A DNA stretch of 64,000 nt from Lepidodermella squamata (taxonomy: Eukaryota; Animalia; Gastrotricha): positions 1,736,001 to 1,800,000 of the forward strand of contig JBLDXI010000007.1 of the NCBI GenBank assembly GCA_047495785.1, given 5' to 3'. The stretch's first letter is position 1. Each line of letters begins with the position of its first letter. The notes below the pieces were generated by a model. It searched no databases. It was not told where the DNA came from and worked only from the letters and a program-made list of their open reading frames with translations. Below are positions 16,505-56,033 of this stretch, piece by piece. The position numbers were made by a program, and so were the translations under genes.

Positions 16505-16547
16505 TTGACCGACTCTTTACCGCTACTATTTCAAATGTTTGACCGAC
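16505..16547. promoter_or_regulatory. Two TTGACCGAC motifs upstream of GST-1 (recurrent GST-promoter motif)
   Basis: Exact 9-mers at 16505 and 16539; the same motif recurs upstream of many other GSTs. Confidence 0.5.
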
Positions 16548-16805
16548 ATAAAATGGATGCTTATGAAGAAGGAATATAGATGCTTAAAAACTGAATAGCG
16601 CGGCCAAATAACAAGATTGTCGAGAATGAATTAATGGCTTTTTTACGATTATTAGTCCGAGAACAGTGCTTTTTTATTCGCGTGACTTTATTGCTGTTCT
16701 GTAGCGGGTGGGCGGGCGGTTAGAAACCAGATCAAAAATTTGTTGAATCAAATGTATCTCGTTCATATAATTTTCGGGCAATGAATTATAAAAGAATCAG
16801 AATAT

Positions 16806-17097
16806 CTTTTAGAGGAACCCAATTTGCCTGTAGCGAAAAACCATATCGGCATTTTGCGGAACCTAATTTATGGTAAGCAAAAGGCCGCTTTTTGAATATT
16901 TCTACGAAATTGAGGCAATGCATGAATTCTATAGTGAAGAATGTGCCTTTTACAGAACTTTACGCTGAATTTAATGATTTATTTCAAATTAACCTGATAA
17001 ATCATGACAAGTTTGAAAGCTTCAAAAAGTAGCTTTAGGCCCATTGAAAATTCCAATATTTGGTTCCGCTAACAGGCAATTTTGGTTCCTCTAAGAG
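16806..17097. mobile_element. MITE with ~37-bp imperfect TIRs
   Basis: CTTTTAGAGGAACCCAATTTGCCTGTAGCG vs reverse complement CTCTTAGAGGAACCAAAATTGCCTGTTAGCG. Related GGTTCCGC fragments at ~40786-40845. Confidence 0.7.
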
Positions 17098-17266
17098 TAA
17101 GACCCTAAAAGAATGTCCATATTGGAATCAAAACCAAATTTTATTCAAAATAAATAGGTTATCATTTAATTATGCAAATGTGAATAGGTGAATACTTGAA
17201 TGTAAAATATTCAAAGTTCGGTATGTAAGGGTTTTGATCTCCAGCCATTCAGACAATTGGCTGTTG

Positions 17267-17952
17267 TTAAAAATCACCCTTCGGACGCTTGGCAAGGTAG
17301 GCTTTCACTCCGGCATTTTCCGCCACAGCTTTAGCAACAGCTGAAACCCCGGTAAACGGGCTGAAGTCCAGAGCCTTATTGTTAGCCACTGCCATCTCGT
17401 ACAAAGCCGCCAAGAATGTGTCCGCATAGGAGTGCTGAAATTTGATGTATTAATAAATTGCGTTGATTTTTCCTTAAATCTTACCCCATCACCGCCGGCC
17501 AGGTTTTTGCCGCCATTTTCTTTGATGCGCTTTTCGAGAAATCCGAAAATTCTCGGGAAGTCCTCCTTAACAAGTTTGCCCATCTTTTCAGCCTTGCGAG
17601 CTTCGTCCTTTTCAAATCTAGCGAGCAGCGCCAATTCGTTGAATTCGCGTAGACTTTCATATGCCTCGTCGATTTTTGCGGTGTGAATCGCATTTTTGCC
17701 ACCTAGCCCGAGATTGGCGCCCACAAATTTGATGATCGCCGCGCTTTGGGCGAGTTTATGCGTCTGCTTGCCGTCGTTGAACTCGAGGACTGGCAGTTGT
17801 TGGAGCGGCATGCTTTCCTTCACACCCGGCCACTGCTCGCCGATGTATCGCTGATCTTCAAAGTCAGCTTTGCCGTAGGCTAGGGTCCATCGAATCGCCT
17901 CGCCGCGGCCAGTTGCGTTGAAGTAGTGCAGCTTGTACTTGCCAGTAGCCAT
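17267..17952 (-). CDS. GST sigma-like (GST-2), intron 17435-17484
   Basis: YKLHYFNATGRGE, QQLPVLE, AQSAAI, GGDG|HSYADT, KRPKGDF*. Confidence 0.95.
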
Positions 17953-18122
17953 TAGAGAGCTTTAGGAATATTTTCAGATAATTTGCAGAAAGAAATTTGG
18001 TTAGCTGTGGTTATGGGAGAAATTCGCCGGCTTAAATAGCATTGCTGCCATGCGTATTGATCGGGTGTGGTACGTGATTTACCTACTAAGTTATTCTGAA
18101 GTTTCTTTTCAGGTATAGAATT

Positions 18123-18268
18123 TTGACCGACATGCTGTAGTATTCGCCTGGATTTCTAAAAATAGCCCCGGCATGTAAAAAATGTCGGTCAAGATTCTTT
18201 GTTTCAGCATGAATAAGATGCGGTTTTATGTACGGGGAATGGCCGTCCTTCTTTGATTCTTGACCGAC
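18123..18268. promoter_or_regulatory. Three TTGACCGAC/GTCGGTCAA motifs upstream of GST-2
   Basis: Exact copies at 18123, 18184 (reverse orientation) and 18260. Confidence 0.5.
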
Positions 18269-18832
18269 ATTCAGTAAGGCTGCGCTAATTTTAGCAATTT
18301 GAGTTTAACCTCAATAAATTGCTTTTAGCACTAAAAAATTAGGTCACGCTATAAAAATGTCATTGCCACTGATTCTTTGCTGAGATAAAAGTTAAGGGAT
18401 AATAATCCGATCTTGGAATTTCGGCTTCAAATTATTTTCTCAGTTGATGATCCATGGAAGTAATAATGAAGGTCGCAGAAGGGACAACCGGAATTCGACT
18501 ATCAAGGTTAAAAAAAAACAAATAAAAAACCGACAACGGCCTTTTTCATGGCAACAAATTTCTGGTTATTTTTTTTATGTAAAGAAAAATTTTACTCTCA
18601 TTTGAATATTCACACCGGGCCGCCGAATAAGTTGCTCACATCATTTTCCTCTGCGATTACTTGCCTGGTTAAAATCACCGATTTGCCGTGATTGATAACA
18701 ACATTTTACAGCTTCTAGGTGAATCTTTTGGGACTAAAAAAATTGGTTAACCCTGAAAAACACGATTTTTCCGAAATTAAACTCCATTTTATTCACAATT
18801 AATTCGAGTTTAATTTGAAAGCATCTCCAGTG

Positions 18833-19515
18833 TTAGAAATCGCCCTTTGGACGCTTGACAAGATGAGACTTGACCCCCTCGTTCTCAGAAATCGCCTTGG
18901 CAACACCGGCAACGCCTGGATACGGAGCGAAATCAAAATAATTACGTTGGCTCATCATATCGTAAAGGCAAGCCAGGAAAATATCAGCATACGTGTACTA
19001 ATAAAATCGATATAAAATGTATAAATAAATAATTAAAATTTGTTTACCCCATCGCCACCAGCTACATTTTTGCCGGCGTTTTCGGTGATGCGCTTCTCGA
19101 GGAAGTTGAAAACCCTCGGGAAGTCATTCTTGGCGACCTTAGCCATCGCGTCCTTCTTCTTTTCTTCGTCCTTCTCAGACACGGCTTTGAAGAAAGCGTC
19201 TTGAAATTCGCGAGCACACTCATAAGCTTCATCGGCCTTGGCGACTTCCTTAGGATTCTTCCCCGAAAGACCGGCGGTATTAGCGACGAATTTAATGATA
19301 GTAGCGCTTTGGCTTAATTTCAAAGTTTTACCATCTTCGGTGAACTCGAGAACCGGCAGCTGTTGAAGCGGCATTGACGGCTTAGCAGCAGGCCATTCTT
19401 CGAATTTGTAACGGTGGTCTTCATAATCGATCTTGGCATAGGCAAATGTCCAGCGGATAGCCTCTCCCCGCCCGGCTCCATTGAAGTAGTGAAGCTTGTA
19501 TTTGCCAGCAGCCAT
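18833..19515 (-). CDS. GST sigma-like (GST-3), 1 intron
   Basis: YKLHYFNGAGRGE, QQLPVLE, SQSATI, GGDG|YTYADI, KRPKGDF*. Confidence 0.95.
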
Positions 19516-19872
19516 AATAGTATGTAAAAACCGCGTGAAAATTTTGGAGATTGTGAATGAAAACTACACACTGCTGCTTTATGAGAGGATCAATACGAAA
19601 AGTGGGGCAAAAAATTTCGGACTCTTGTTTATTATCGTGATATTTATTTTATGACGATGATAATAAAACTGAACCTCATTTTATAAAGACTTGCGTTTGA
19701 TAATTTGCCACGTGCTATAATGAAACCAATGATTGCTCATGAAAAAATCTCGTTCTAACTCTAAGATTCGATTTCAATGGATAAGCGAAACTATAGAATT
19801 GATCCATTATGAATTTTATCGATTTTTCCAGTCATTAAGATAATGAAGATTCATTCACTATTTTCGACGCAT

Positions 19873-20555
19873 TTACATGTCACTCTTTGGGCGCTTGGCG
19901 AGGTAGGCTTTCACTCCGGCATTTTCGGCCACAGCCTTGGCCACAGCTGAAACACCAGGAAATGGGCGTAAATCCAAAACCTTTTTTTCCACCGCAGCCT
20001 CAAAGAAAGCTGCCAAACAGGTATCCGCATAGGAGTACTAAAATTTGAAGGTTCAATAAATTATTTGAATTTTTCTTGAAATCTTACCCCGTCACCGCCG
20101 GCCAGGTTTTTGCCGCCATTTTCTTTGACGCGCTTTTCGAGAAATCCGAAAATTCTAGGAAAGTCTTCCTTGAGAACTTTACGCATCATTTCACCCTTTC
20201 GAGCTTCGTCCTTTTCGAAAATTGCTCGGAACAGCATTTCCTCTAATTCGCGTACACATTCATAGGCTTCGTCGATTTTAGCGGAATGAACCGGATTTTT
20301 GCCACCCAGCCCGAGATTATTGCCCACAAATCTGATGATCGCACCGCTTTGGGCGATTTTATGCGTCTGCTTGCCGTCGTTGAACTCAAGAACAGGTAGC
20401 TGGTGAAGCGGCATGCTCTCTTTCACGGCGGGCCATTGGTCAAATTTATATCGCTGATCTTCAAAGTCAACTTTGCCGTAGGCCAAGGTCCATCGAATCG
20501 CCTCAGCGCGGCCACCGCCGTTGAAATAGTGCAGCTTGTATTTTCCAGTAGCCAT
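19873..20555 (-). CDS. GST sigma-like (GST-4), 1 intron
   Basis: Close paralogue of GST-2/5; GGDG|YSYADT, KRPKSDM*. Confidence 0.95.
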
Positions 20556-21180
20556 TGCTAAAAATATTGCAACTTTTTACAAATTTGAAAAATGTGGTTA
20601 TTCGTGGTTGAGAGAAATCGCGCCAGCTTAAATAGTACGGTCATGTATTGATCAGGCGTGGCAGTAATTTAGTCCCGCAGCCTCTTTTTGACCGATGCAA
20701 GACAGCTTTCGACCGACCCGCATTGATAATAGCTCAACTGCTCGCTAAAAAACTGCACTTATCCACGCTAAATAAACGCGATCGATTGCGTTGACCTGTG
20801 CGGCAGACATTTTATGGCTTGTGCTAAATTTAGAAATCTAGTTTGTCTGAAATTATCGATTAAAAATCCGCAGGTATTTTTGCGCCTCCTAGTACTTATC
20901 TACATGCTCTTTGAAGATGACAAAAAATTCAAAAAACCGTCCCCAAACGTCAAAAATACGACTTTTGGCATGCCAAAATAAATACAAGACAAATTAGCGT
21001 ACCGCTAAGATTTAGCTGGTTCAAAGATGGCGCTGAGAAAAGGCATAGGCGAAAAATGGCCGATACGGAAATTTGTCTACAGTTGAGTAGTAGCAGATCG
21101 TCTACGTTTCTGCAGTGATGTCAGTTACTACCTTCTCACCCTCAATTTAGCATTTAAATTAGATAACAATTATATACAAA

Positions 21181-21538
21181 CGTGGTCAGACTTTTTAGCA
21201 GTGACAATTCAGCAAATGAGGGTCAAATCAACATGATCACACGATGTTTGTGAGCTCAACTTCAATGCAGCGCATAGTCCCCCCGCTGAATACGGCTGAA
21301 TTCTGTTGATGAAATGTCTCCGCTGAAATGTCACTGCGTAAATGTCACCGAGATAAAGATAATAAATTTGGAAAAAAATAAAATAAATTATCAAAAATCA
21401 CAGCTGACTTGTCACTGATGATTTGTCACTGCGTAAATGTCGCAGCTCAAATGTCACTGCTCATTTGTCACTTATGAAAAGTCACTGCTCATTTGACCCT
21501 CATTTGCTGAATTGTCACTGCTGAAAAGTCGTACAACC
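21181..21538. mobile_element. MULE-like non-autonomous element (foldback MITE), 358 bp
   Basis: 40-bp inverted repeat with 1 mismatch (21189-21228 / 21491-21530), internal GTCACTGC tandem motifs, and 9-bp flanks ATATACAAA / ATATTCAAA. Confidence 0.75.
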
Positions 21539-22055
21539 ATATTCAAAATAATATTTAATTTTATAAAAAAAAATTTCAGGTCGACTGTGGACATTTCCGT
21601 GCTTTAAGGGGGTGAGAGCATCCTAGAGGTTTGAAATTCAAAATTTAAAATCATCAACAAAACCTGAGTAAAAGCATCTTGAAATCAAAGATCCGTACTT
21701 CTTCAAGTGAACAAACTATATTTGCAATTTGCTAGAAAATACAGAAAACTCGTCAAATCCCACTTTTCACTTATTTCTGGTCATTTAAAAAAAATTCATG
21801 TGAAGGTATAAAAGGCGCATTTTTTCTTCGGCAAGTTGTCCCGACGCCACATGTATTTCCATTTTCAGCTATCCTTTCTTGATTGTTAATATTATGACCT
21901 CGAACTCTATTGTGCGTATCTAGTAACCGCTTTTATTTTTAATGCTTGAAAGAAAAAAGAAAATCTACAAATAATTAATAATTTATAGGCAGGTCTCTTC
22001 ATCAATTCTTCCCAGCTATTCTCGGCTAGGTGCAAATTCGATGATTGGCACGCAT

Positions 22056-22743
22056 TTAAAAATCAGCCTTTGGACGCTTTGCGAGGTAGGCTTTCACTCC
22101 GGCACTTTCGGCCACAGCTTTAGCTACAGCGGAAACTCCAGGAAACGGGCTGAAGTCCAGAACCTTGTGAGCAGCTACCATCTCGAACAAAGCTGCCAAA
22201 AAGGTGTCCGCATAGGAGTGCTAAAATGTCATGTATTACTATTAATAAATTATTTTGATTTTTTGCTTATCTTACCCCATCACCGCCGGCCAAGTTTTTG
22301 CCGCCATTTTCTTTGACGCGCTTTTCGAGAAAGCCGAAAATTCTCGGGAACTCTTCCTTGATAACCTTTCCCATCAATTCACCCTTGCGAGCTTCGTCCT
22401 TCTCAAACATAGCGCGGAACAAAGTTTCTTGAAATTCGCGAAGGCTTTCGTAGGCCTCGTCGATTTTGGCCGCATGAACAGGATTTTTGCCACCGAGCCC
22501 GACGTTGTTGCCCACAAATTTGATGATCGCTGCGCTTTGGACGAATTTATGCGTCTGCTTGCCGTCGTTGAACTCGAGAACAGGAAGTTGGTGGAGCGGC
22601 ATGCTCTCTTTCACAGCCGGCCATTGGTCCCTTTGGTATCGCTGATCCTCAAAGTCGACTTTGGCGTAGGCCAAGGTCCACCGAATCGCCTCAGCGCGGC
22701 CACCGCCGTTGAAGTAGTGCAGCTTGTATTTTCCAGCAGCCAT
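22056..22743 (-). CDS. GST sigma-like (GST-5), 1 intron
   Basis: Close paralogue of GST-2/4; GGDG|HSYADT, KRPKADF*. Confidence 0.95.
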
Positions 22744-22898
22744 GTTATATTTCGGGCAGATTCTTCAAACGGAAAAATGTGGTTAGTCGTGGCTCGAAGA
22801 AAAGATGGCGGCTTAAATAGTGCGTCGTGTATTGATCAGGTATGGCGTATGTGTTTACCTTCTTTTTTATTCTAGAACTTTCCTTACCGCGAAATTTT

Positions 22899-23031
22899 TT
22901 GACCGACTCGCATTCATAAAACATCAATTCCTCGTTAAAAAACTGCACTTTATTCACGCTGCATCAATGCCGTGGATTCTTGACCGACATTTAATAGCAT
23001 GTGCTAATTTTAGATATCGAGCTTGACCGAA
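22899..23031. promoter_or_regulatory. TTGACCGA motifs upstream of GST-5
   Basis: Exact TTGACCGAC at 22899 and 22980; TTGACCGAA at 23023. Confidence 0.5.
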
Positions 23032-23445
23032 ATAATTTATTGAACCTACCAGCGACCCAGTTCAACCCCCGCAGTAGTTCTTATTATTACTGTTATATAC
23101 AGGTTATTGGAAATCATCGTGTAACCTGGGTTCGTAATATCATACGTTTCTACGCTTATTTGAGAATCATTCCCGTTCTTTTCAACGCACTAGAATTGTT
23201 TAATTGTCGAATTGTGGAGGCTAACTTAATTGAAGTATAAAACTCTTATTATTTGGGAAAATGGAAAATAAATCGAAATCTAATAATTAAAATAATTCTC
23301 CAATGCGCAAAAATCTAAGTCAGCATCAGAATTATAAAAAAACTTGTTCTCGTAGCTCACAAATCAGAGTAATTTATTATCGAGGTGAGGGGTAAACAAA
23401 AGACCACTTTCAGCAAAAAATATCCACGCTAAAAAAATTGATCTA

Positions 23446-24293
23446 TCAACGTTTTGAAATCGGCCGCTTATTCAGGTAAGCTTTGATATTTGCCACTTCT
23501 GCGATTTGTTTGCCGAGCTTGATGAAGTTAGGGTAGTCACTTAAATCGACCAACGGCAGCGTTTTAACGAGGTTTTCATAAGCAGCCCCGAGACAGATAT
23601 CAGCATAAGTTAACTAAAATGAGCCAAATTTATGAATTAAATCATTATTAATTTTCTTAAAAAATCACCCCACTTCCGCCGGTCAGGTTTTTACCGCCGT
23701 TTTCTTTGATCCGTTTCTCGAAGTAACCCAGAAGTCGTGGCAGGGCCCCGCCAATGAATCCCATGAGCACCGCAAACTTCATGTTGTCATCCTTTTCCAG
23801 GTTGTACTCGTAGAGACCATGCGAAAGGTCCTTCAAACTGTAAATCTTACTTTAGCCTTATATTCTGAAAATCAGATTAAAAAAAAACCTTTCGTAAGCT
23901 TCATCAGCCCTTGCGATTTGTTCAGGAGTTTTCCCAGCAATACCGAAAAGTCGAGCTAAATGCCGGATTATTGCTGTTGTTTGACATATTTGAATAGTTT
24001 CGCCTGATTCTGTCGGTACTTCAAGAACAGGAAGCTGCCCCATCGGCATTTTCGGCTTCATAGCAGGCCAATTAGCCATTTCAACGCGCTCGTCATCGAA
24101 ATCGGTAGCCTGGGATCATATTATAAAAAACTAGGTCATGCGGTAAAACTTTCTGAATTTTTATTATTACGAATTTATAAGCTAATATCCAACGAATTGG
24201 CTCAGCTCGCCCGGGAACGTTGAAGTAAATTATCTTGTACTTGCCCTTCGGACAGTTAGCCGTACTGCTGGCGCCACTGCAGGCTGCTCCCAT
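23446..24293 (-). CDS. GST sigma-like (GST-6) with N-terminal MGAACS extension, 4 exons
   Basis: MGAACSGASSTANCPKGKYKIIYFNVPGRAE...AYKF|ATDFDDERV...MPMGQLPVLE...GGSG|LTYADI...KRPISKR*. Confidence 0.9.
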
Positions 24294-24946
24294 AGTGTAT
24301 ATAGTTTAGAATTGCAGCGAAAACAACAATAAAAATAAGCAAATGAGAGTGTACCACAGCGAAGTGAGTATCCGCCACGGGGCGGCAAGGACAAGTTGCG
24401 CGCGTCAACGTCGCCCGGCAACTGGCGATCGATGCGACCTATGCAGTCGATCATAAATGCGCGATTTTGACCGAGCTGGACGCAGGTAATAAACTAGAGG
24501 ATAAACATAAACTTGTTGTCTGTGGAATATCTTATTAACCAGTAACCAGGCGGTAAATTAAAAAATGGCGAGCTTTCAATTAAGGATATAGGATTTTATA
24601 GATAAATAAAAATAAAATAAATATATAAAATAGGATAAAAAATATAAAAAAATTAAAAAAATTTCCTTAAAAAATATTTTTTATAGCTCGAATTATTGAT
24701 TAATTTTTTTTTCAAATTGAGGAAAAATGCTGATGTGAAAACTGGGATCCCGGTGGAATTATTGATTAGGCACCCTTCCAATCCGAACATTGAAAAAATC
24801 AACTTTGATCTGGAGCAATAATAGAAAATTTCAGAAGACCATTTATTTCCTAAAACTCTAATTTTATTTCAGCTGCCCTTATTGAGGATCGATCAAACGT
24901 TAAATTCCTAATTCCTAACTAAATAAACGTGCTTCGAATGAGAAGT

Positions 24947-25680
24947 TCAAATCGGAGTCGGCGGGCGTTTTTCGAGCCATTTCTTGATTTCCGGGTGATC
25001 GCGAACTTTCATGGCAACGCCAACAAGTCCAGGGTAAACAGCCTTAACATTGACGTCGAAATTGATGAACGGCACTTGGATCAAACCATCAACAGCTACA
25101 GCAACGGCGATATCGGCATACGTCGTCTCCTTGCCAGCCATAAATTTCCCGCCATTATCTTGCAGTTTCCTCTCCAAGTAGGCCAAGGTTCGTGGCAGGA
25201 GTTCCTCCTTGAAAAAGGTCGTAGCAACAAGTTTACGAGCTTCGTCCGATTCGAAATGGGCGCGAATTCCGTGTTCGATTAGGTCTTTCAGAATTTCCAG
25301 GGTTTCATCGGCGTGAATAGCCTCCAGAGAGCCTCTTGGGACTAAGTCGTACCAATAAGCGACAGCTCGGACCAAAGTCGAAGATTGGGCGAAGGTCCTC
25401 TTCTTGCCGTCAAGTTCAACCTCCAAGAACGGAACCTGACCGATTGGGGCGACTGAAATTTTAAGTAAAAATACAATTTAGTTAGATGTTGGGAAACAGT
25501 AAACTTACTAGCTTTCATCGCCTTCCAATCTTCAGGGCTTAGACGGGTTTCTTCCCAATGCGCCTTGCCGTAGGACAAGATCCAGCGGATGATTTCAGAC
25601 CGGCCTCGGACGTGAAAATCGACAAGTCTAACCTTGCTAGGCCTTTCCTTGCCAGGTGGACCTTTCGGGAGGAACGACAT
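24947..25680 (-). CDS. GST sigma-like (GST-7), catalytic Tyr replaced by Asp, 1 intron (~25453-25507)
   Basis: MSFLPKGPPGKERPSKVRLVDFHVRGRSE; PIGQVPFLE; AQSSTL; TYADI; KRPPTPI*. Confidence 0.9.
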
Positions 25681-32439: not shown

Positions 32440-32458
32440 TATGATGCAATATATGTTA

Positions 32459-44249: not shown

Positions 44250-44436
44250 TCTAAGAAGAAGTCAACAAAAAATTAACGAAATTCACGAAAATATTATCGT
44301 ATAGCAAGATTTTTTCATTCATTACTGACTCGTGGCTTACAACTGGTAAAGAAAAAACGCCACTTCAAAAATCTTGCTTGTGGGTTTCTTCTTATATGCA
44401 AGCAATATCGTGCTTGGCTCGTCAACATGCGCCGTA

Positions 44437-45592: not shown

Positions 45593-47959
45593 ATGCGTTT
45601 GCTATTCGCCATCGTTCTAGCAAAGACTTTCTTCTTTGCTGCAGGGAAGAAGGCAAAAGGGCTGGATATTCTGGCCTTTGTCGCTTTTACAGGCAATGAA
45701 CCAAGGGACGGAAAGTTCTGCAGAGCCTCAATGCAAGTAGCCGTCGACGCAGCGAATAACAACACCAGCTTCATACCCGATTATCACATCAATGCTGTGT
45801 ATAGAGATGAAGGACCAGTGGCTCTTCAAGTTGTCAACAGAATGATGGAATTCAGGGATAGAATTGATGTTACTAACATCTCCCCTATCATTGTTGGACC
45901 ATATTTCACGACAGGATGCCAACGCTTGGCTCAATTGCTGCATCACGTCAATATGACAGCTGTTGGAACTGCTTGCAGTACTCCATTTTTCACTGGTGAT
46001 AGGAAGAACTACCCTAACCTCTACAGGATTAGCATGCCCGGCGAAGACGTGAATATTCCAAAAGTCGAATTCATCCTGAAATTCGGGCAATGGAGAAAAG
46101 TGGCGGTAATCACCAATGCCCTGTCAATTTACGACTACTCAGTCGCGGCGTTATTCGTCCAACTCGCTACTTCAAAAGGAATCGCTATTCCTTGGTTCGA
46201 TATAGTGAGCGATGTAAGCGATTCCGTTATCGAATCTCTGAAAAATAGCGACGCTCGAATCATTAACATTGACGTTGGGAACAGGCCAGCTTTTATGCAG
46301 CGATTGTTCTGCCAGGCTTATAAGGTCGGAATAACCGGGTCTAGGTACATCTTCCTAGCTCATGCAGCTGGATTCGTTGACGAACCCAGCTTACCCCTCG
46401 TCATCTACCCAGGCTGCACTAGGGAGATAGTTAGGGAACAGTATAGATACACCTATTGGATCGGTCCAACCACTGTTTCCACCATACCATTCGGTATCCA
46501 ACCACTAGCCTTAGGGTATGACTTGACAGGATTCGAGAACAGATTGGATGAAATGATGAATTCATCCCGAGGCTCTGATTACATTATGAGACAACTATGC
46601 CACGACGCTATGGTTGAAGCTTTGGTAGCTCTAGATCGATCTGAAAAAATCCTGAGGAATTTTTCAATGACTTTGTCTGACTATCGCAATTACCCCAAAG
46701 AGGTGAGTCACGTGATCAATCGGTCTCTTGCTGTGACTGACTTTATTGGAGCTCGCGTTGGCAGGACCAAGTATTCCCCCCGCTTAGAAATGGACTACGA
46801 ACCTCAATACGTCTCTTACCTTCTGTCTGAAGGCAGTCTTAATCCTATCGACTTATTATCCGTAAAATTGAACCCTGACAACGCGTCATCCACACCAACT
46901 ATACTTTCCCTAAGACCTATAGTCTGGGCGACAAATGACGGGAAACCTCCGAAGGATTCGAGAACGGTGGAGACAGTTATGAAGGATGTAAGCCGAGTAG
47001 TGACTGGAATTATTTGGTCACTATCAATTGTATCGTTAATGCTATCTCTTGCTGCCCTGATCGGATATTGCCGGTTGGAATCCTCGCGGCGAATATCAGT
47101 TGTTCTGGCATACAAAGTAGTTTCGTCTGCAGCTGTTCTTCTGCTGTTAATTTCGGCTTGCATTCATTCGACGCCCGGAGTTTTGTTCGCAGGCGTTCCA
47201 CAAATTTGTAATATCAATATAGCTCTGGCAACCATAGCACTGTCTCTCTACCACGGAGGTTTGATCGCCAAGCTCATGTTCATCAGACAACATATCAAAG
47301 GTATTATCAAGCAATGCGGCCAAGTCATTGTAGTAGAAAGTTTCCAAGAAGACACATTGTCTTCAAAAACTCATTCTCAGTCAGTTAATACTAGTACCAG
47401 GAGGCGTGTGATCGACGCCAGAGGGCAAGTGAAATCAAGGAGGCTTATAATTGTCCAGAATGCAATTGTTCAGAAGTTTAATACGCGACACTATTTTAAG
47501 ACGCTGGCCTTATTCGTTTGCATCAATTCAGTCATCTTGATTGCGTGGTTGGCAATCGAGTCGGTTCGATTTGAAACAATCCCTAATATCTCTTCATCAG
47601 GCTATGACTACAAGACAGATACTTACTTCGAGATTAGGACGGCCAGCTGTGATTACTCGGAATCTTTACCGTGGATTCTGGCTCTATTATTGATTCACGT
47701 GTTACCGTTAATAGCCTGTCTATTACTGGCATTCTCTTCGTTCACTCAGCTGAAAAAGATTGATGGACTGGCTAAAACTCTTGAATTCGGCAACATTGTC
47801 AGCACTTTGATCAACTCGATAACTCTCATAACTGCGACGGTGCTAATTCTGTTGATTCTCACTGAGCCACTAGACAAACAAGTCACCCTGAGCTTCACGT
47901 TTCTAGTCGAGGCAGCATTTGCTAGCATCGTTAATTTTTATTACGTTTTTAAGCGCTAA
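45593..47959 (+). CDS. Orphan class C GPCR, GABA-B-receptor-like (GPCR-1), intronless
   Basis: Signal peptide; Venus-flytrap motifs (AV..AN...IPDY; IIVGP; YPNLYR; WRKVAVI; DARII; FCQAYKVGITG.RYIF; DA; W....PPKD) joined directly to 7 hydrophobic helices with TM3 and ECL2 Cys. No cysteine-rich domain. Confidence 0.88.
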   Translation: MRLLFAIVLAKTFFFAAGKKAKGLDILAFVAFTGNEPRDGKFCRASMQVAVDAANNNTSFIPDYHINAVYRDEGPVALQVVNRMMEFRDRIDVTNISPIIVGPYFTTGCQRLAQLLHHVNMTAVGTACSTPFFTGDRKNYPNLYRISMPGEDVNIPKVEFILKFGQWRKVAVITNALSIYDYSVAALFVQLATSKGIAIPWFDIVSDVSDSVIESLKNSDARIINIDVGNRPAFMQRLFCQAYKVGITGSRYIFLAHAAGFVDEPSLPLVIYPGCTREIVREQYRYTYWIGPTTVSTIPFGIQPLALGYDLTGFENRLDEMMNSSRGSDYIMRQLCHDAMVEALVALDRSEKILRNFSMTLSDYRNYPKEVSHVINRSLAVTDFIGARVGRTKYSPRLEMDYEPQYVSYLLSEGSLNPIDLLSVKLNPDNASSTPTILSLRPIVWATNDGKPPKDSRTVETVMKDVSRVVTGIIWSLSIVSLMLSLAALIGYCRLESSRRISVVLAYKVVSSAAVLLLLISACIHSTPGVLFAGVPQICNINIALATIALSLYHGGLIAKLMFIRQHIKGIIKQCGQVIVVESFQEDTLSSKTHSQSVNTSTRRRVIDARGQVKSRRLIIVQNAIVQKFNTRHYFKTLALFVCINSVILIAWLAIESVRFETIPNISSSGYDYKTDTYFEIRTASCDYSESLPWILALLLIHVLPLIACLLLAFSSFTQLKKIDGLAKTLEFGNIVSTLINSITLITATVLILLILTEPLDKQVTLSFTFLVEAAFASIVNFYYVFKR

Positions 47960-47999
47960 ATGTTTCTTGGCATTTGATTGTCACTGTTACGGTGTCGTC

Positions 48000-48692
48000 T
48001 TAAAATGGAGTATTCTCGCGTTTCGCAAGGTATGCCGCGATTTCAGGCGTTGCTTCTATTGTCTTTCCCAAGGCCACAAGACCTGGGGCAATGTCCCAGT
48101 CTGAATCTTCGACCGTCCCGCTTCGTCTCAATGAGTCAAAGTACTGTGCCAAATAGATGTCAGCGTATGTGTACTGTTACGCAGAAAAATTTGTAATAGG
48201 TACAGACAGAAATTAAAAGCTCACGTTTTCACCACCGGCAAGATTTTTTCCGTTGTTTTCTTGCAGTTTCTTCTCTAGGAACTTGAAAACACGCGGGAGG
48301 ACGTTCTCCCGAAGCGCAGTCCTGTTCGCCTCCTTCCTGGCTGGGTCAGGTTCGAAAATGGCTTTGTACATAGCTTCCTGCACTTCCTTCAAGCTTTCGT
48401 AGGCTTCATCGGCTCGAGCAGCCTCTTCGTCACTGCTTCCGTACAACCCAGCGACAGCTGCGACGTGGCGGATGATAGCGCCGCTTTGGATGATAGCTTG
48501 CTTTTTTCCATCCTTGCGCCACTCTAGGATAGGAACCTGACCTAAAGGCGTCAGAGTTTTGATCGGAGGCCATTCTTGCATAGTGAATCGGCGGTCGATG
48601 AATGGAATCTTGCTGTAGGTGAACATGTAGCGAACCAACTCGCCTCGACCGCGAGCGTGGAAGTAGTGTAGAGTATAATTTGGCTGATCCAT
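48000..48692 (-). CDS. GST sigma-like (GST-16), 2 exons
   Basis: MDQPNYTLHYFHARGRGE...TPLGQVP...GGEN|YTYADI...KRENTPF* (stop 48000-48002). Confidence 0.92.
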
Positions 48693-49815
48693 GGACACGA
48701 TCAAAGTATAATTTCTTTTTTACTCTTGACTTTAGTGTGCTTGCACCGAAGTGGTTTAAAATTGTGGACAACCGGTCACCTTAATCTCGTTCCTTATCAG
48801 CTCTCCCACGGCGGTATCAGCCGGGTGTCTATAATAGAGCGAGCAGTGATAGAACTTGGAGATTATTTATTAATATCCAAGCTATAATACCTAACACGGT
48901 CATTTTTTACCGGACTGGCTATTTGGTGATGCTTATTCTTAATCATCAGAACCATCGAAGTCCGAAGTTCGCCAATGACAAAGCCTTCACAGAAACAGCT
49001 TTCATCATTAGTTGGGCTTCAAACGGGGTTTTATAAGCCATGCATCCATTTCATACAAGTTGACAACTTTAATTTCAAAGAATTTCATTGGATTGATCAG
49101 TTTGATTGATCAAAAGATAGGAGCTAGTCCGGGCGGTCCTAAAAAAATGTTGCTGAAGACGCAGCCCAAACGGGTGTCCGACTTACTCGATCTCTGCAAT
49201 CTTGCTAATGCACCCCGTATACGTTTGAAAACAAACATGTCTTGGATTTCAGGTGATTACCACGACTCAGTCTTTACGCCAGTGTAAGCAAAATCTCAGC
49301 TGACAAGCTGCCCGGGGACATTGCAAAAGTCTGCAAATTCGAAAGCAAGCCAGAGTGAGGAAGGGATTAGCGTAATTTTCGAGTCTTTCAAGTTGGTGAC
49401 ATACGACACTCAAATCCCAACCGAATCGTGGGGGTTATTTTCAGCTGTCCGGATTTTCAGATGTTATTTCTAGATACGAGGAAGCAGGCAAGGGTATTAA
49501 TGGAATTAAAACCCCCCGACATTTGTAATTATTCCAGTTCACGCTAAAAATACACTGAATGTCCCGTTCCGTTCGCTCAAGAGTTTGACTCCATTTGATT
49601 ACGTATTGAGCAAGCTTTGAATCGAAACAGCAACTGTATTTTTCTCGCCAATACCACTCTTCCCAATAGGATTTGCTCACTTCAGTCACAAAGACGATGA
49701 ATTAAAAAATTTATTATAAAAAATCCCTCACGACATATTACTCACGACTCACACGGATACAAGTACAAACCAATAATTATAGACTTCGAAAAGTCGAGCA
49801 GCTAGCTAAAGTCTG

Positions 49816-52368
49816 TTAATAGGAGTCAGTGAAATGAACGTCAACCGGCTTCCTGCAGATAAATTTGGCCGCGTCTTTGAAGAGCGAGAAGGAAATAGCA
49901 ATGAAGCCACTGAGAGATTCAAATAGGAATATCCCGACGATGAAAGCATTCTGAGCTGTCGGGTTCTGCAGTCCAATGATGATCAGAATGCCAGCAGCAA
50001 GCATTGTTAAGCAATTCAGAGCAGCAAGTCTTGTTTCTATGCTGATTGTTGCCAACTGCGCGAGTTCGGGCGATAACCGGGTGTTATTCGATGTCAGTTG
50101 CCGCAATTTGTAAGCGATGAAGCCTCCGTAGAATAACAAACAGCCGTGAAGTGCGACGAAGCATGCCAGCCAGTAAATGTTGTGATCAGCATGGCACTCA
50201 CCCTCCATGGATATCGTCCACAAATCAGCGTTTACGTCATAAAAACGCCCTGTATCTTCTACAACGTAATACTGTTTCTCGGTAACAAGCCATGCACACA
50301 GCAAAGCAGAGTTGATAACAACAAAGACTAGAGTAAACAGGAAAATGAATTTTTCATGCCCTTTTCCAGGAGGTTTGACTCTTATCAGACTCGACACCTT
50401 CCTTGCTGCATCGCTAGGGTTAGTTCGAAGTAAACTTGGTCTCCTCGGGTCGCTGTCGGTGCTTTTTTGAGGTGCGTTGGAAGTCGATTCTTGGATATTC
50501 TGTGCCGTTTTAGAAGCTACTAGCACTGTTTTAGATCGTTTCGTGCGACCAAAAGTCGTCCCTAGGATGGTTTGCATCGTTCTTTTCGGTCTGTGACTAT
50601 GAATCTCCCTTTCTAGATCTTGGTTTAGGAAATAGAGCCTTGAAAATATGTAAGCGTGCATAGTCGCAAACCCTAAGATGGCTAAGACCATTTTCACGCT
50701 GCACATTATGACTCGACTATTGTTCGAGTTCGGTATGCTGTTACCCGCGAAAACCATCGATGCGATGTTAAGTAAGATGCATCCAAAGATGAAAAGCGCT
50801 CTAGCAATGCGATCTTTATCCAATCCAAGGGAGTGGCGTGAGAAAAGCAGCTTCAGTAGGATAGCTAGTTGTGGAATAGACAGAAAAGCTCCGATAGAAA
50901 CAGTCCCGTAGAAAAGTCTCGGGTCTTCATTGTGTTTCACGTGAGTCACCTTTGCAGCATCCCTAGGAGGTTTTCCATCACTTGTTACCCACTCTATTGG
51001 TCTCATCAATTGGAATTCATAAGTGTCCGGATTTAGGAGGACCGAGTCTCTCCTGGCGAATGTTTTGTAGTTGTATACAAATTCACCAACCAAGTTCCAT
51101 GAAAACACGTAGTTTGGCTCGCTGTCAACTTCCATCCGGGATGAGTAGCGCTCGTATCCATACCTCAGCGTCCTCAATTCAACCGCCCCAGCACTTTCAT
51201 TAGCAACCTTCATAACAGTCTCGGGATATTTGGCGTAGTCTTTCAGCGAGAGATTCATTTTCTTAAGCCGTGTCTCAGTGTCATTTAAAGTAATTGCCAT
51301 TTGCAGAGCAGCGTCATGACATTCCAGCCTTTTCGTGTAATCAGCCGGGCGTGACTTGTTCGTATAAAGGTCGTAGGCAGCCTCAAATTCGACGAGATCG
51401 TATCCCAGAGAAGTAGGACCCTGATTTCCGGGCGATTTTGGAACTCCGCCAATGCCTGCGATGAAAACAGTCGTTCTCAGTTGCAGCCTAATGATTGCAG
51501 CAGTGCATCCGGGGCGGATGTCTTTCGTGATGGTTGACGGGTTGATGAATGAGTAAGCCCTGGCAATGAAGTAGTATTTGGGTCCAGTTATGCCTAGGTC
51601 ATAGGCAAAGCAGAGGAAATCCATTAGAACAGTATTTCTTTGAAAAAATGTCACAAAAATGCGGATGTCATTTTCTTTGAAGCCCTGGACAGTATCGAGA
51701 CCAACATTTTCGACCGAATCGAAATAGGCGATAGTCAAACCGAGAGCGATCGCATTTTGATAGAAAGTTGTGGCCAAAGCGATATCAGTTGGATTTCGAA
51801 TCATGAGAACCCCAATACGCCTCCAATTTCCTACTGATTTGATGAATCGAATAGTTTGCAGTGCTGCGATGTCCCCTGGAGTTTGAAGACGGTAAAGATT
51901 AGGATAACGAACCCTGTCAGCAATGAATGATGGAGCGCCGCATCCTGACGTAGTTGCGATCATGTTCAGAGGCTTCAACAACTGCGCGAATGGGGCGCAT
52001 CCAAGACTTGATGATGCTCCTAGAACAGTCGGTGATTGAAATAGAGTAGAATCGTTATTGTTACGAAACTTCTCGACGTACTCGACGAGGACACGAGACG
52101 CCCAAGTAGAGTCGCTCCACTCATCCACGATGTAAATGTCGAGTTTATAATCCGGCAAGATGTCAGATCGAGAGTTGACAACATCGGCGAGAAAACGAGT
52201 CGCAGTCATGCAAGTTTCTGGGTAGGTGACCGGGTTAGGTCCACTGAGAGGGAAGGTGGTTAGCACTTGAAGCCGATAGGGCTTATCAAGTGGAATAGGC
52301 CTAGTCTGCGCCGTGACCTTCATGCTGATCACTAACAAGGCCAAAGTTGAAGCTTGCAAGAAGAGCAT
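49816..52368 (-). CDS. Orphan class C GPCR, GABA-B-like (GPCR-2), intronless
   Basis: VNSRSDILPDYKL, DRVRYPNLYR, WRRIGVL, DIRIF, LCFAYDLGITGPKY, W.TSDGKPPRD, then 7 TM. Confidence 0.88.
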   Translation of the reverse strand: MLFLQASTLALLVISMKVTAQTRPIPLDKPYRLQVLTTFPLSGPNPVTYPETCMTATRFLADVVNSRSDILPDYKLDIYIVDEWSDSTWASRVLVEYVEKFRNNNDSTLFQSPTVLGASSSLGCAPFAQLLKPLNMIATTSGCGAPSFIADRVRYPNLYRLQTPGDIAALQTIRFIKSVGNWRRIGVLMIRNPTDIALATTFYQNAIALGLTIAYFDSVENVGLDTVQGFKENDIRIFVTFFQRNTVLMDFLCFAYDLGITGPKYYFIARAYSFINPSTITKDIRPGCTAAIIRLQLRTTVFIAGIGGVPKSPGNQGPTSLGYDLVEFEAAYDLYTNKSRPADYTKRLECHDAALQMAITLNDTETRLKKMNLSLKDYAKYPETVMKVANESAGAVELRTLRYGYERYSSRMEVDSEPNYVFSWNLVGEFVYNYKTFARRDSVLLNPDTYEFQLMRPIEWVTSDGKPPRDAAKVTHVKHNEDPRLFYGTVSIGAFLSIPQLAILLKLLFSRHSLGLDKDRIARALFIFGCILLNIASMVFAGNSIPNSNNSRVIMCSVKMVLAILGFATMHAYIFSRLYFLNQDLEREIHSHRPKRTMQTILGTTFGRTKRSKTVLVASKTAQNIQESTSNAPQKSTDSDPRRPSLLRTNPSDAARKVSSLIRVKPPGKGHEKFIFLFTLVFVVINSALLCAWLVTEKQYYVVEDTGRFYDVNADLWTISMEGECHADHNIYWLACFVALHGCLLFYGGFIAYKLRQLTSNNTRLSPELAQLATISIETRLAALNCLTMLAAGILIIIGLQNPTAQNAFIVGIFLFESLSGFIAISFSLFKDAAKFICRKPVDVHFTDSY

Positions 52369-54192
52369 GTTCAATGTAATACAGTTCTACGGGTGAAAAT
52401 GCAGCGAGTGAAGAATACGTGATATTAATTCTGCTAATATATGGGCGGGGTTTTTCGCATCTTTCGCTTTCGCAAAACAAGCTCATCTGTTAAATTAAAG
52501 CTAAATTAAGTTTCGAACAAGATATGATTTTTAATCAAGCTAAATAGCTAAGAACATTTTGACCATCTAGCCAAATAAGAGCATCTTTGATAAATCATAG
52601 ACGTGAGCACGTGAGCATTAACTTCGAGGTTGGATGAATATTAATAAATAATTTGGTGGAAATCAACATCCTAAATTCTCACGTGTGTGTTGCCACCTGG
52701 GAAGGACACATTTTCTTACAAATATTGAACGAGTTGAGGAGATATCTTCTAGAGGATGAAGATTGGAGTTTAAAACCAAATCTGCTCTTCTGACTTCTGA
52801 CTTGGCAAAAATGAGCAATAAAATAAACGGGGTATTTGCGCAAAACTGACTCCAAGTCAGCTTATGTTTTTAATTAGTTGGGAAAGAGATGGCCTTTTCT
52901 CGTCGCTTCTCGGGTCTTCATTGAACAAAATGTGAGTTTTAGATGAAAGAAAGTCGCGGAAGTTCAAAAACGACACACGTGAGAGTTACATATTACCAAA
53001 AATAGCTGCCAAATATTTCCTGTTTTAATAGTAAAATGACAAATCAAAAATTGAGTTTCACAGATTAAGTGCGTTTTAAGTGTGAAGACATCTTTAAGGG
53101 CTTCTAAGGGGTTTTCAGGCTAGGTCTATGGTGTGAAGTGTGATTTTGCTAGCACGCTATCCATATCCACAGAATGAGAAAATAAAGCCAAAACCTACGA
53201 CTGATGATCATAGATTAATTTTGATGGGATTGATTGTTTCCAGGATTCAAGATCTATGAAAAATATTGAAATATTTTCAAACGGTGCTAGGTCTTTTTGA
53301 TATTGGACGTGCTTGTGTAAGGCGATTCTCTAATATAGCAAACAATTTCGGCGAGCATCAATTTCCCCAAGAAAGGAGCAGATTCATTTTGGCGATTCTT
53401 CTTAAAAAGCTCACAAACAATCGATCGCAAGTTGTGCAAATCAGCCCTTATTTACGTATTAGTCCCAATAAATAAAGGAATAGACACTATGCTTCGCCTT
53501 CTTTTTATCGCCAGCTTGTGCCTCTCCTTTAAAAACGTGCTACCCTAGCGGTCACGGATGAAGCAGTCAGTAAATATTTCATTCCCTCATAACTCGTCTT
53601 ATAAAACATTCGACGGCTGACGTCTGCGCAAGGATCCGGATTATCCTAGGGCCATTTCCGGTAATCCAGGCCAAAATTCTCGATGTGACCGATTGCACAG
53701 CACATAATCAGGGGAAAGATTCCTGAGTGCTTCCGTTACCGCCAGCAAAAAAGTCCAACCAACAAGGTGTGACATTTCAAACCAGTCCGTTGATTTAATT
53801 AAGCCACATGACGCAGATAGGAAGTAGGAGTCTGGCCCTTCGAATGTCCGGTTTTTTCAACACGGATCTGCCGAACACGCTTTCCCAAAGGGGAAAACTC
53901 TTCTAACTAGGACAAAAGATGAACGGAGTCCAAAAAAACAACGGAGGCAATTCATCAATAATGGTGCATACTGCAAGGTTGCTCCGCAATCGTTTCCTAC
54001 GAGGTTTCTCCAAAACCTGGTTTCCTATGAAGATGGAATCTGGGTCACATTTTCAGCATCGGTGTTCGCTCTGATGACACTCAATATGTATAAATGAAAG
54101 CTATAAAATCACGAATTTATTGCTACATATGCTGTAATCGAATGTGAGCTATCAGAACCATATAACGTTCGCAACCACAGTTTCAGCGGTAA

Positions 54193-55070
54193 CTAACGAT
54201 CCGTTTTTGGGCGTTCGGCAATGTATTTGGCGATGGCAGGGATCTCTTCAATTGACTTGGCCAGTTTGATAAGATTTGGATACTGCGACTCAATGAAATC
54301 AGCCAGGCAATTGACGTAGTCTTGGCAACCGCGAATAATCCAAGCCACACAAAAATCAGCCCATGTTAGCTACGGTGAGAGAATCATAAATAATGATGAT
54401 TATTATTATGCAACATATTTCCTTACTTGATTGCCAACCATGTGCTTGCCACCATTTTCGACAAGCCGCTTTTCCAATGCACCGAAAATTCGTGGATACT
54501 CCTTAGTCTTGAGTAACTCAATTGTTGATTTTTTGAATTGTTCATCCTGGCTGTAGTATACTGGACACGCTTTGAGAAAGGGTTCCTGCAATGAGTCAGC
54601 GATTTCATCGCATGTCGCTGCTTCAATGTCCGATGAACCGCACAAGCCTAAAACAGAAGCGCTACAGTTGCAGTAGAAAATGAAAAACCAAACCAACCGA
54701 ATCGTTTCGCCAGAAAACGGGTAATCGCCACAGATTGCGCTAATCTATGAGTGGTGCCGTTTTCGGTAATCTCCAGCAAAGGAACCCTCCCATTTTCGTA
54801 AAGAGAGAATGGAACTGAAGTAGAGAATGTTATAAGTCAGACTGTAAGTTGTAATATCTACAATTTCAACCTTACTTGTAGGGTCTTTCGCCATCCATTG
54901 AGGAATAGTGAATCGGTAATCCTCAAACTCAACCCCAGCATAATGACAAAGGTACCTTATAGCCTCTACCCGGCCTCGAACCTAAATTTGCGAAAAGGTT
55001 AACAATCAACGCTTCCACAGCAGAATATCCATACATCGAAATAATGCAGCTTGTATGTGGTAGGCATCAT
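54193..55070 (-). CDS. GST sigma-like (GST-17), 5 exons
   Basis: MMPTTYKLHYFD|VRGRVEAIRY...DPT|IPFSLYENGRVPLLE...AQSVAITRFLAKRF|GLCGSS...VGNQ|LTWADF...ERPKTDR*. Confidence 0.9.
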
Positions 55071-56033
55071 ATCAGAATAAAATACAGGATTTGAACACCC
55101 TTTTCGCCGCTGCAAAATGAAAAAAAGTGCGGAGATTGCAGCAACTAATTCATTAATGAATGAACTATAAGCGCAAGTACGAAAGATTAAATGTATTACA
55201 TCAGCGGTTTTTATTTCAGTGATAAGGCACTCGTGCCGCAATTATAATGCTCCAATCGAGGTAAATCGCGCATGCTACCTCGAAATCTATTCATTTTTTT
55301 AACCACGAAATTATGCCCAATAGCTTTCCTACAATTAGCCGTTGTTGTGATTGCTTTTTGCGTGTGGCGTTTACAAATTTGCAAATTAGTAAAGTTTGTA
55401 GTAATTATTGGGCAACAGATTTTCGGTTATCGATATAGATTGATTAATCTCTTTGCTGGGTCAGAAAAATGAGTTCGCATTCCGATTAATCGCCACGAAT
55501 TACACCGTGTTATGGTCAGAATATCGGTCATAGCTGGCCATCACCACTGCCGTCGCTTATTCGTGCTTTCCTACGCTGAAAATTGCATCAAGAGTTCAGT
55601 TTTATAGCAGCCATTCTCATCATTGATTCCTATTTTTCGAGATAGAGTTCGCGTAATAATCTTTTCTCCGCGGTTGCTGAGCTTGGCTTAAGCGGGATAT
55701 ACTCACAACTTGGGTAAGGTTTCCAAAGTTCGGAGGGCCAAAGTAGCCGAAGTTGGTCGTACAAAAAAGTGAGCATTGTTTATAAAGTGTTAACCGTCGG
55801 ACGGCGCGAACTATAGGGCGAAGCATCCGAAGTTTTCGGAAAATGCAACGCACTGTGCTGCATCGCTAGGGTGTCTTAACCGAAGCTCCGCCGAAGTGTT
55901 CATTTTTATTATTTTTGAAATAAATGTTTGCTGTTAGGTTTGATAGCATTCATTATTCATTGAATAAATCAGAAATCACGCATGCATGTAGTATAACTTT
56001 TAACCGAACCGTATTCGTTATCCGGTAGGATCA

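Follow-up and report, generated by a model that had tools for sequence, protein, structure and literature searches.

Regulation by CNC-bZIP proteins is the classical mode of control for GSTs of other animals, and the classical GST promoter element is the antioxidant response element of CNC-bZIP/small Maf proteins, TGACnnnGC. Xenobiotic sensors of the NR1I/NR1J type (PXR/CAR/HR96/DAF-12 type) bind paired half-sites (DR, ER, IR) at fixed spacing. The Tailless/TLX-type site is AAGTCA(A), and Motif 1 of Drosophila core promoters is YGGTCACACTR. The RORE is composed of RGGTCA after A/T-rich sequence and is bound by a monomer (PMC4750502).

We analyzed a 64-kb stretch of DNA (hereafter the window) containing 18 sigma-like GST genes in tandem, G1 to G18, a cluster located in a detoxification island between UGTs and a P450. 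The proximal promoters of nine of the 18 GSTs carry exact or variant copies of a short word, TTGACCGAC/GTCGGTCAA. Because this word has been kept in half of the GSTs while the surrounding DNA diverged, selection has very probably preserved it as a site where one regulatory protein would switch these genes on, an element of an ordinary kind.

The element resembles the antioxidant response element in its location in GST proximal promoters and in its TGAC/GTCA half, but its sequence is TGACCGAC, then A or T, and does not match TGACnnnGC, a consensus that is not enriched in these promoters (0.51 versus 0.46 per kb). Like the NR1I/NR1J response elements, it has a GGTCA-like core and is associated with detoxification genes, but it is absent from P450 and nearly all UGT promoters, and the regular pairing implied when the first-pass annotation invoked receptors of this type is not seen, as the spacings between copies are irregular (21, 34, 43, 61, 76, 81 bp, and larger, over a range of 21–137 bp). 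With the Tailless/TLX site it shares GTCAA, although AAGTCAA is not enriched here; with Motif 1 it shares YGGTCA, although it lacks the 3′ half CACT, and its copies are variable in position and lie upstream of a TATA box rather than at the start site. The likeness to the RORE/RevRE is more extensive. Both contain a single GGTCA-type half-site that has no partner at fixed spacing and is preceded by A at −4, W at −3, and an invariant T at −1. Numbered relative to the half-site, position −4 is A (10) or G (3) in 13 non-homologous copies of the element, position −3 is A or T in 11, and position −1 is T in all 13, such that the flank A-W-G-T is compatible with the W-A-W-N-T that precedes the half-site of the RORE, an A/T-rich stretch ending in T. 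The element differs in that the half-site begins with C rather than a purine in 16 of 17 sites, and its strong preference for G at the "N" position and its strong 3′ AARA extension are features of its own.

Occurrence and definition of the element

All nine exact copies of the 9-mer listed by the first-pass annotation were recovered (starts at 16505, 16539, 18123, 18184 on the other strand, 18260, 22899, 22980, 26948, and 35105), against 0.36 expected from dinucleotide shuffles, none of 100 of which reached nine. They belong to G1, G2, G5, G8, and G10 and start 149–346 bp 5′ of the ATG, in agreement with the ~140–350 bp given earlier, and both orientations are represented (eight sense and one antisense relative to the gene). 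The one-mismatch variants at 20688, 20709, 23023, 24467, 29456, and, in reverse complement, 39800 are likewise present. Two further one-mismatch copies, which read TTCACCGAC, had been missed, at 29206 and 34869, both in reverse complement; we count these as real sites because the copy at 29206 is exact in the other haplotype. At k = 7, 8, and 9 the strongest-enriched k-mer of the window is the word of the element, and all 12 copies of TCGGTCAA in the window are inside GST promoters.

The flanks of the 9-mer are informative only for ~2 bp on the 5′ side and ~3 bp on the 3′ side, with R at −2, W at −1, R at +9, and A at +10 in the 13 non-homologous sites. We consider it quite likely that the copies represent a 13-bp cis-regulatory element, R-W-G-T-C-G-G-T-C-A-A-R-A, whose core is GTCGGTCAA and whose 3′ side is rich in A/T. 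It is a concrete candidate for a regulatory word in an unsampled invertebrate. A scoring matrix built from the window's own sites, with at least 15 bits as the threshold for a real site, finds 17 matches in the window, all of them upstream of the TATA-like box in the promoters of nine of the 18 GSTs; this 17-of-17 figure is partly circular because of the training sites, while the k-mer and shuffle tests are free of circularity. Neither exact 9-mers, TCGGTCAA, nor matrix hits occur in the window's coding DNA, introns, or promoters of interspersed lectin/receptor genes or UGTs, and rather than being equally frequent in all promoters or intergenic DNA, the sites of the window are confined to the promoters of GSTs. 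By these counts, the word is real, non-random, and GST-promoter-specific. The 13-mer AGAATATCGGTCA, earlier grouped with the element as a shared promoter sequence, is indeed present at 45255 and 55518 but scores 7.6–7.8 bits on the matrix, compared with at least 15 for real sites, and because of this low score is probably something separate from the element.

Motif-bearing promoters (G1, G2, G4, G5, G6, G8, G9, G10, and G11) have one to three copies each, located 100–360 bp before the ATG and ~10–230 bp upstream of a TATA-like box that is itself at −77 to −99 (table 1); every copy of the element sits upstream of such a box. The copies adjacent to the TATA-like box are antisense, and the majority of all copies are sense. 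Within the tandem battery, half of the GSTs carry the motif and half lack it. A single factor would co-regulate the motif-bearing subset, and the homotypic clustering of copies would raise the occupancy of that factor.

Table 1. GST genes, copies of the element, and TATA-like boxes in the window. Copies are given as the 13-bp element; offsets are of the 9-mer start (or of the box) relative to the ATG.
Feature	Gene	Offset	Position	Strand	Remarks
Tandem cluster, 18 sigma-like GST genes			15681..56910	-	tblastn with window ORFs; Pfam GST_N/GST_C; ATGs checked
GST ATGs, 18	G1–G18		16364, 17952, 19515, 20555, 22743, 24293, 25680, 26721, 29104, 34767, 39694, 42173, 43355, 44249, 45136, 48692, 55070, 56907	-
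Exact copy, sense	G1	-183	16537..16549	-	20.0 bits; identical in other haplotype
Exact copy, sense	G1	-149	16503..16515	-	20.4 bits
Exact copy, sense	G2	-316	18258..18270	-	homologous to G5 -245 copy
Exact copy, antisense	G2	-240	18182..18194	+	17 nt in common with two neighboring G2 copies
Exact copy, sense	G2	-179	18121..18133	-	best match, 21.9 bits
Variant copy, core GTCGGTCGA	G4	-162	20707..20719	-	15.9 bits; homologous to G5 -164 copy
Variant copy, core ATCGGTCAA	G4	-141	20686..20698	-	15.3 bits
Variant copy, core TTCGGTCAA	G5	-288	23021..23033	-	15.3 bits
Exact copy, sense	G5	-245	22978..22990	-	20.7 bits
Exact copy, sense	G5	-164	22897..22909	-	20.4 bits
Variant copy, core CTCGGTCAA	G6	-182	24465..24477	-	16.9 bits; identical in other haplotype
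Exact copy, sense	G8	-235	26946..26958	-	21.6 bits
Canonical extended half-site TATGTAGGTCA, antisense	G8		26828..26838	+	just 5′ of TATA-like box; by alignment, homologous in position to G9/G10 antisense copies
Variant copy, core GTCGGTTAA	G9	-360	29454..29466	-	matrix hit; exact word in other haplotype
Variant copy, core GTCGGTGAA (+ strand reading), antisense	G9	-110	29204..29216	+	10 bp 5′ of TATA-like box; exact in other haplotype
Exact copy, sense	G10	-346	35103..35115	-	21.6 bits
Variant copy, core GTCGGTGAA, antisense	G10	-110	34867..34879	+	just 5′ of TATA-like box; matrix hit
Variant copy, core GTCGGTCGA, antisense	G11	-114	39798..39810	+	8 bp 5′ of TATA-like box; 18.7 bits
TATA-like box CTATTTAAG	G1	-87	16443..16451	-
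TATA-like box CTATTTAAG	G2		18031..18039
TATA-like box CTATTTAAG	G4		20627..20635
TATA-like box CTATTTAAG	G5		22812..22820
ATAAATA-type box	G8		26811..26820
ATAAATA-type box	G9		29184..29193
ATAAATA-type box	G10		34847..34856
TATAAA box	G11		39780..39789

Candidate binding factors

The most likely candidate for the binding factor, which we put forward tentatively, is a nuclear receptor that would take single extended half-sites as a monomer in the style of ROR/HR3 and Rev-erb/E75. Such a receptor would tolerate or prefer a half-site that starts with C instead of a purine, and some nuclear-receptor DNA-binding domain of this animal, whose genome has at least 150 zf-C4 (nuclear-receptor DNA-binding-domain) matches, would bind ATGTCGGTCAAAA. 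The position just 5′ of the TATA-like box of G8 is informative in this respect: it is occupied by a canonical ATGTAGGTCA, and the homologous position is ATGTCGGTCA or ATGTCGGTGA in G9 and G10, with the extended half-site TATGTAGGTCA of G8 matching the position of ATGTCGGTCA in the C32 haplotype of G9. This G8 site is one of only three that fit WAWNTRGGTCA. Compared with the rest of the window, GST promoters are 2.4-fold denser in RGGTCA and 4-fold denser in WAWNTRGGTCA; an occasional AGGTCA or TGACCC is found near copies of the element (in G8 and G10) and is not kept in paralogues. The proposal of the first-pass annotation that CGGTCA is a variant half-site is reasonable with respect to the 5′ flank and the canonical G8 homologue, but all but one of the 17 sites fail the strict RGGTCA consensus because of their C at position 1. 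We found no literature that pairs CGGTCA with "half-site." If a nuclear receptor binds it, the element would serve as a bait for assigning target genes to one member of a very large and undescribed receptor expansion.

A serious possibility, although one that falls short of probable, is that the element is a selected site for a factor of another family, either a lineage-specific C2H2 zinc finger or a bZIP/CNC-type protein recognizing a TGAC half-site, and that the likeness to a receptor site is coincidental. The near-invariant C breaks RGGTCA, and a footprint of 13–17 bp with a strong 3′ AARA would suit a multi-finger protein; the classical role of CNC-bZIP proteins at GSTs would suit a bZIP, but the motif has no fit to TGACnnnGC, which, as noted above, is not enriched. 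Against either family, G8 differs by an A/C exchange at a homologous site and has a perfect canonical extended half-site there, and canonical half-sites are co-enriched with the element. If the factor is not a nuclear receptor, the word would be an ordinary family-specific promoter element.

A more specific version of the nuclear-receptor reading, that a lineage-specific receptor evolved to read ATGT-CGGTCA-AARA and has a sub-battery of sigma-class GSTs under its private control, seems unlikely at present. Were it true, the locus would present a newly evolved pair of sensor and response element and a handle for de-orphanising a member of the expansion.

Distribution among detoxification genes

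The first-pass annotation proposed the motif as a candidate xenobiotic-response element. We consider it improbable that the word is a general xenobiotic-response element for an NR1I/NR1J-like xenosensor shared by GST, CYP, UGT, and ABC genes. The setting of the cluster within a detoxification island and the receptor-rich genome are in keeping with such a role, as is a C20 UGT with the full 13-mer 65–73 bp before its ATG, where ~0.02 such hits are expected by chance. However, of the 54 copies of the full 13-mer in the genome, 17 are in the two haplotypes of the GST cluster, and the 37 elsewhere are at about chance level; in a comparison of coordinates that used the full 13-mer rather than degenerate versions, none of these 37 was near any of ~100 P450 matches and one was near the 26 UGT matches, so that a broad xenobiotic regulon is unsupported. 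The element is also absent from the flanking UGTs and P450 of the island, from nine of the 18 GSTs of the cluster, and from four further GSTs in the continuation of the cluster beyond the window, and the paired half-site architecture is missing. Among the other GST clusters, one on C9 contains one exact copy, and the rest are without the element. On these coordinates, the candidate element is almost private to this GST cluster.

The copies outside the cluster that we inspected fall in coding DNA. One of these hits is in a ribosomal protein L23a-like ORF (recognized by reading its translation), another is in the coding part of an RXR-like gene, and two are in SEA-like mucin paralogues. Elsewhere in the genome, paired copies of the word (on C1, C4, C7, C21, and C30) are in coding or unannotated DNA, and none is at a detoxification gene. 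SKN-1-like, XRE, and MRE words are ~2.4-fold enriched in GST promoters, a value based on short words and small counts. In the literature, the 9-mer occurs in 347 papers, in primers and the like, for example, a mutagenesis primer.

Shared ancestry, constraint, and repeats

Given one ancestor for all GST promoters, the word could have survived by chance in tandem duplicates without having any function, and three pairs of copies are clearly homologous (G2 −316/G5 −245, G5 −164/G4 −162, and G10 −346/G9 −360). We regard inheritance without function as very improbable. The exact word is common to lineages with saturated synonymous sites and flanks that do not align: promoter alignments by blastn are limited to G2–G5 (66 bp), G4–G5, and G9–G10, and dS is 1.0–1.15 for G8 versus G9/G10, >1.5 for G1 versus all others, and saturated between the two clades. 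The earlier statement that the motif occurs in promoters that do not otherwise align holds for G1, G2, G8, and G10, but G6, which had been included, has only a one-mismatch copy. Several promoters have two or three copies that differ in position and orientation, and when paralogues are collapsed to one promoter per alignable group, a check proposed by the first-pass annotation, seven copies remain in four promoters, the word is still the top 9-mer, and none of 300 shuffles reaches seven. In protein comparisons, which were based on single exons or ORFs rather than joined spliced models, the best relatives are only 45% identical, and a metagenome scan with a GST alignment returned no relative; the statistics that bear on function are accordingly drawn from this one genome.

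Between haplotypes, the core differs at two of 126 positions and the flanks at 316 of 4772 (Fisher one-sided P = 0.009), that is, the core is ~4-fold better conserved. Purifying selection would keep the element as the putative binding site of one sequence-specific transcription factor. This constraint is not absolute because the window allele of G9 has lost both of its sites through single substitutions, with its coding frame intact; the C32 allele has two exact sites. The two alleles constitute a natural experiment, one without both sites and the other with both.

That the word is a piece of some repeat or mobile element, as the 17 nt common to the three G2 copies (with inverted pairs 48 and 57 bp apart) and the TCGGTCAAC within a 178-bp satellite on C9 might suggest, or a 3′-end/termination signal of the upstream tandem gene, is extremely unlikely: the 9-mer is not a repeat because its 715 copies in 121.2 Mb (0.38 per 64 kb) are what composition predicts, the many copies with conserved flanks or termini of a dispersed repeat or MITE are not seen, in the satellite the word has neither the 5′ G nor the AARA context, an Rfam search for non-coding RNA gave no matches in the window, and the distance from a copy to the stop of the upstream gene varies (~190–1500 bp), whereas that to the downstream ATG is confined. 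A genome search for direct pairs, two copies of TCGGTCAA within 300 bp, recovered mostly this satellite and a polyubiquitin gene; otherwise, the GST cluster is the main locus.

Recurrence of a nine-base word upstream of GST genes

The window (C7:1736001-1800000 of a 121-Mb assembly) contains 18 sigma-like GST genes (G1-G18, numbered by rising ATG position), all on the minus strand as mapped by tblastn with the window's own ORFs; GST_N and GST_C domains are confirmed by Pfam, and the closest public relatives are only 45% identical (protein comparisons used single exons or ORFs, not spliced GST models). The recurrence of an exact 9-mer core, hereafter the word, upstream of these genes is real and statistically robust. 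The nine exact copies reported by the first-pass annotation are exactly those that we find, against 0.36 expected from shuffles, and its one-mismatch copies are likewise present. All nine lie 149-346 bp upstream of the ATGs of G1, G2, G5, G8, and G10, eight of them in sense orientation relative to the gene. An unbiased comparison of k-mers between the GST upstream DNA (9.7 kb) and the remaining window ranks the word first at k = 7, 8, and 9, and TCGGTCAA occurs 12 times in the window, each time inside a GST promoter. The word is no repeat, as its 715 genomic copies in 121.2 Mb (0.38 per 64 kb) equal the base-composition prediction.

A profile from 13 non-homologous sites, R-W-G-T-C-G-G-T-C-A-A-R-A (the element), carries information in two bases 5' and two to three bases 3' of the 9-mer, and the three G2 copies have 17 nt in common. 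A matrix scan of the window gave 17 hits of 15 bits or more, all of them in the promoters of G1, G2, G4, G5, G6, G8, G9, G10, and G11, a figure that is partly circular because the matrix was trained on these same sites; at this threshold there are none at G3, G7, G12-G18, the interspersed non-GST genes, or the UGTs of the window. Every element copy is upstream of a TATA-like box (CTATTTAAG, ATAAATA-type, or TATAAA) located 77-99 bp before the ATG, and in G9, G10, and G11 an antisense copy is 8-10 bp upstream of the box with sense copies farther out. The box is the identical CTATTTAAG in G1, G2, G4, and G5, at 77-87 bp from the ATG; a short way upstream of it, G2, G4, and G5 also have GATCAATAC in common. 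The distance from the element to the stop codon of the upstream gene spans ~190 to 1500 bp, which argues against a 3'-end signal; an Rfam search of the window gave no matches. The 13-mer AGAATATCGGTCA, noted earlier as shared upstream of G15 and G17, is exact at both genes (0.05 expected), with unrelated flanks and a low score against the element matrix; it could be another kind of site or a coincidence.

Two PAN-kringle-lectin genes, three ANF_receptor-domain receptor-like genes, UGT genes, and one transposon lie between or beside the GSTs, and UGT genes, the 18 GSTs, a P450, and more GSTs form a detoxification gene island inside ~115 kb of the contig. In the 1098-aa PAN-kringle-lectin ORF a block of ~320 residues is repeated relative to its 781-aa paralogue, which looks like a recent internal duplication.

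Coordinates of promoter sites, genes, and related loci (window positions unless a contig, C, or a locus on it, L, is named)
Feature	Position	Orientation	Remarks
ATGs of G1-G9	16364, 17952, 19515, 20555, 22743, 24293, 25680, 26721, 29104	minus	tblastn
ATGs of G10-G18	34767, 39694, 42173, 43355, 44249, 45136, 48692, 55070, 56907	minus	tblastn
TATA-like CTATTTAAG	16443-16451 (G1), 18031-18039 (G2), 20627-20635 (G4), 22812-22820 (G5)		
AGAATATCGGTCA	45255-45267; 55518-55530	antisense to genes	119-131 bp before G15 ATG; ~450-460 bp before G17 ATG
G9 promoter sites lost in window allele	29204-29216, 29454-29466		C32 allele (L009) exact at both
PAN-kringle-lectin ORFs	35320-38616; 29643-31988		1098 aa; 781 aa
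Detoxification island blocks	C7:1734861-1741420, 1751681-1792910, 1828317-1829846, 1838433-1848994		
Full 13-mer at signal-peptide-bearing UGT gene	C20:2651721-2651729 (L022:921-929)	antisense to gene	
Full 13-mer upstream of two-DBD nuclear-receptor gene	C54:2550660-2550672 (L024:1660-1672)	sense	~300 bp upstream
RXR/USP-like gene	C9:929845-931598 (L023:1045-2798)	minus	13-mer in coding DNA (GIYFDR)
Tandem satellite	C9:100-16160	both	178-bp unit

Retention among paralogues and haplotypes

Only three promoter pairs are alignable by blastn: G2-G5 (66 bp), G4-G5 (291 bp, 68%), and G9-G10 (84%). Synonymous divergence in exon 1 is ~0.5 within G2/G4/G5, 0.25 for G9/G10, 1.0-1.15 for G8 versus G9/G10, and >1.5 for G1 versus all others; between the G1-G5 and G8-G10 clades it has reached saturation. 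Neutral sites have therefore turned over in at least four lineages that have the exact word in common. When each alignable group was reduced to a single promoter (15 in all), the word still led the G+C-containing 9-mers, with seven copies in four promoters, a count reached in none of 300 dinucleotide shuffles (maximum four). This evidence, drawn from sequence comparison, says that the word is more than duplicated promoter DNA.

A region of contig C32 (543-595 kb; 543647-595000, loci L005-L010) is collinear with window 1-64000 in reverse orientation at 91-99% identity, without the transposon insertion at window 6970-14932 and with a different structure around G3-G5. It is most likely the other haplotype, and its 11 exact copies of the word are therefore allelic, not independent. 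The haplotypes differ at 2 of 126 positions in the 9-bp cores versus 316 of 4772 in flanking promoter DNA (Fisher one-sided P = 0.009). Both core differences are single substitutions in the window's G9 allele, each costing one site, in the promoter most diverged among clearly allelic pairs (86.6%); the two alleles lend themselves to a natural test by allele-specific expression. The best reading is that selection maintains the element as a promoter site specific to this gene family and used by one transcription factor; it may be a variant of the extended nuclear-receptor half-site.

Genomic reach and candidate binding factors

The 13-mer RWGTCGGTCAARA has 54 genomic copies, 17 of them in the two haplotypes of the cluster, which make up ~0.07% of the assembly; the other 37 compare with ~30 predicted by simple composition. 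By coordinate comparison, none of these 37 is near any of ~100 P450 matches and one is near a UGT, 65-73 bp before its ATG, the only detoxification gene beyond GST clusters with the full element among the copies checked. One copy precedes a nuclear-receptor gene, and another is in a gene that we take to be RXR/USP-like from its canonical CEGCKG P-box and KREAVQEERQR T-box; the other copies inspected are coding. In a separate GST cluster, on C9, a single exact copy precedes one GST by ~380 bp, and four more GSTs and a P450 in the continuation of the present cluster beyond the window have none. The element is therefore all but confined to two clades of the present cluster. The broad detoxification regulon that a general xenobiotic-response element implies is unsupported for the full-length word by this genome-wide distribution, and the label is unproven. 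The end of C9 carries a tandem satellite whose unit contains TCGGTCAAC.

The nature of the binding factor is a matter of inference. A monomeric nuclear receptor is a tentative candidate, somewhat short of probable. The core contains GGTCA, preceded by A at -4, A or T at -3, and T at -1 of the half-site, a flank that agrees with the 5' extension of monomeric-receptor sites such as ROREs, defined as RGGTCA with A/T-rich sequence 5' of it (PMC4750502). G8 has a perfect canonical site, TATGTAGGTCA, just upstream of its TATA-like box (alignment A2), and the homologous position reads ATGTCGGTCA in G9 of the C32 haplotype and ATGTCGGTGA in G10 and the window's G9, so that A and C alternate at half-site position 1 within a conserved block. 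Relative to the rest of the window, GST promoters are enriched in canonical half-sites (2.4-fold by density) and in canonical extended sites (4-fold). However, unlike a RORE, the element breaks RGGTCA at 16 of 17 sites, which counts against a nuclear receptor, and its long footprint would suit a zinc-finger protein. The word does not fit the ARE consensus, which is not enriched in GST promoters. The NR1I/NR1J xenosensor proposed by the first-pass annotation is improbable because the half-sites do not come in pairs and the element shows no spread to CYP and UGT genes.

Also in favour of a receptor, nuclear-receptor DNA-binding-domain matches in the genome number at least 150 out of 438 candidates, counting both haplotypes. 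The C54 copy of the element belongs to a stretch (C54:2.55-2.67 Mb) occupied by a very large tandem array of receptors, with dozens of zf-C4 hits. The receptor search also gave paired matches on other contigs, e.g., C25/C26 and C15/C105, which suggests that both haplotypes are held widely across the assembly.
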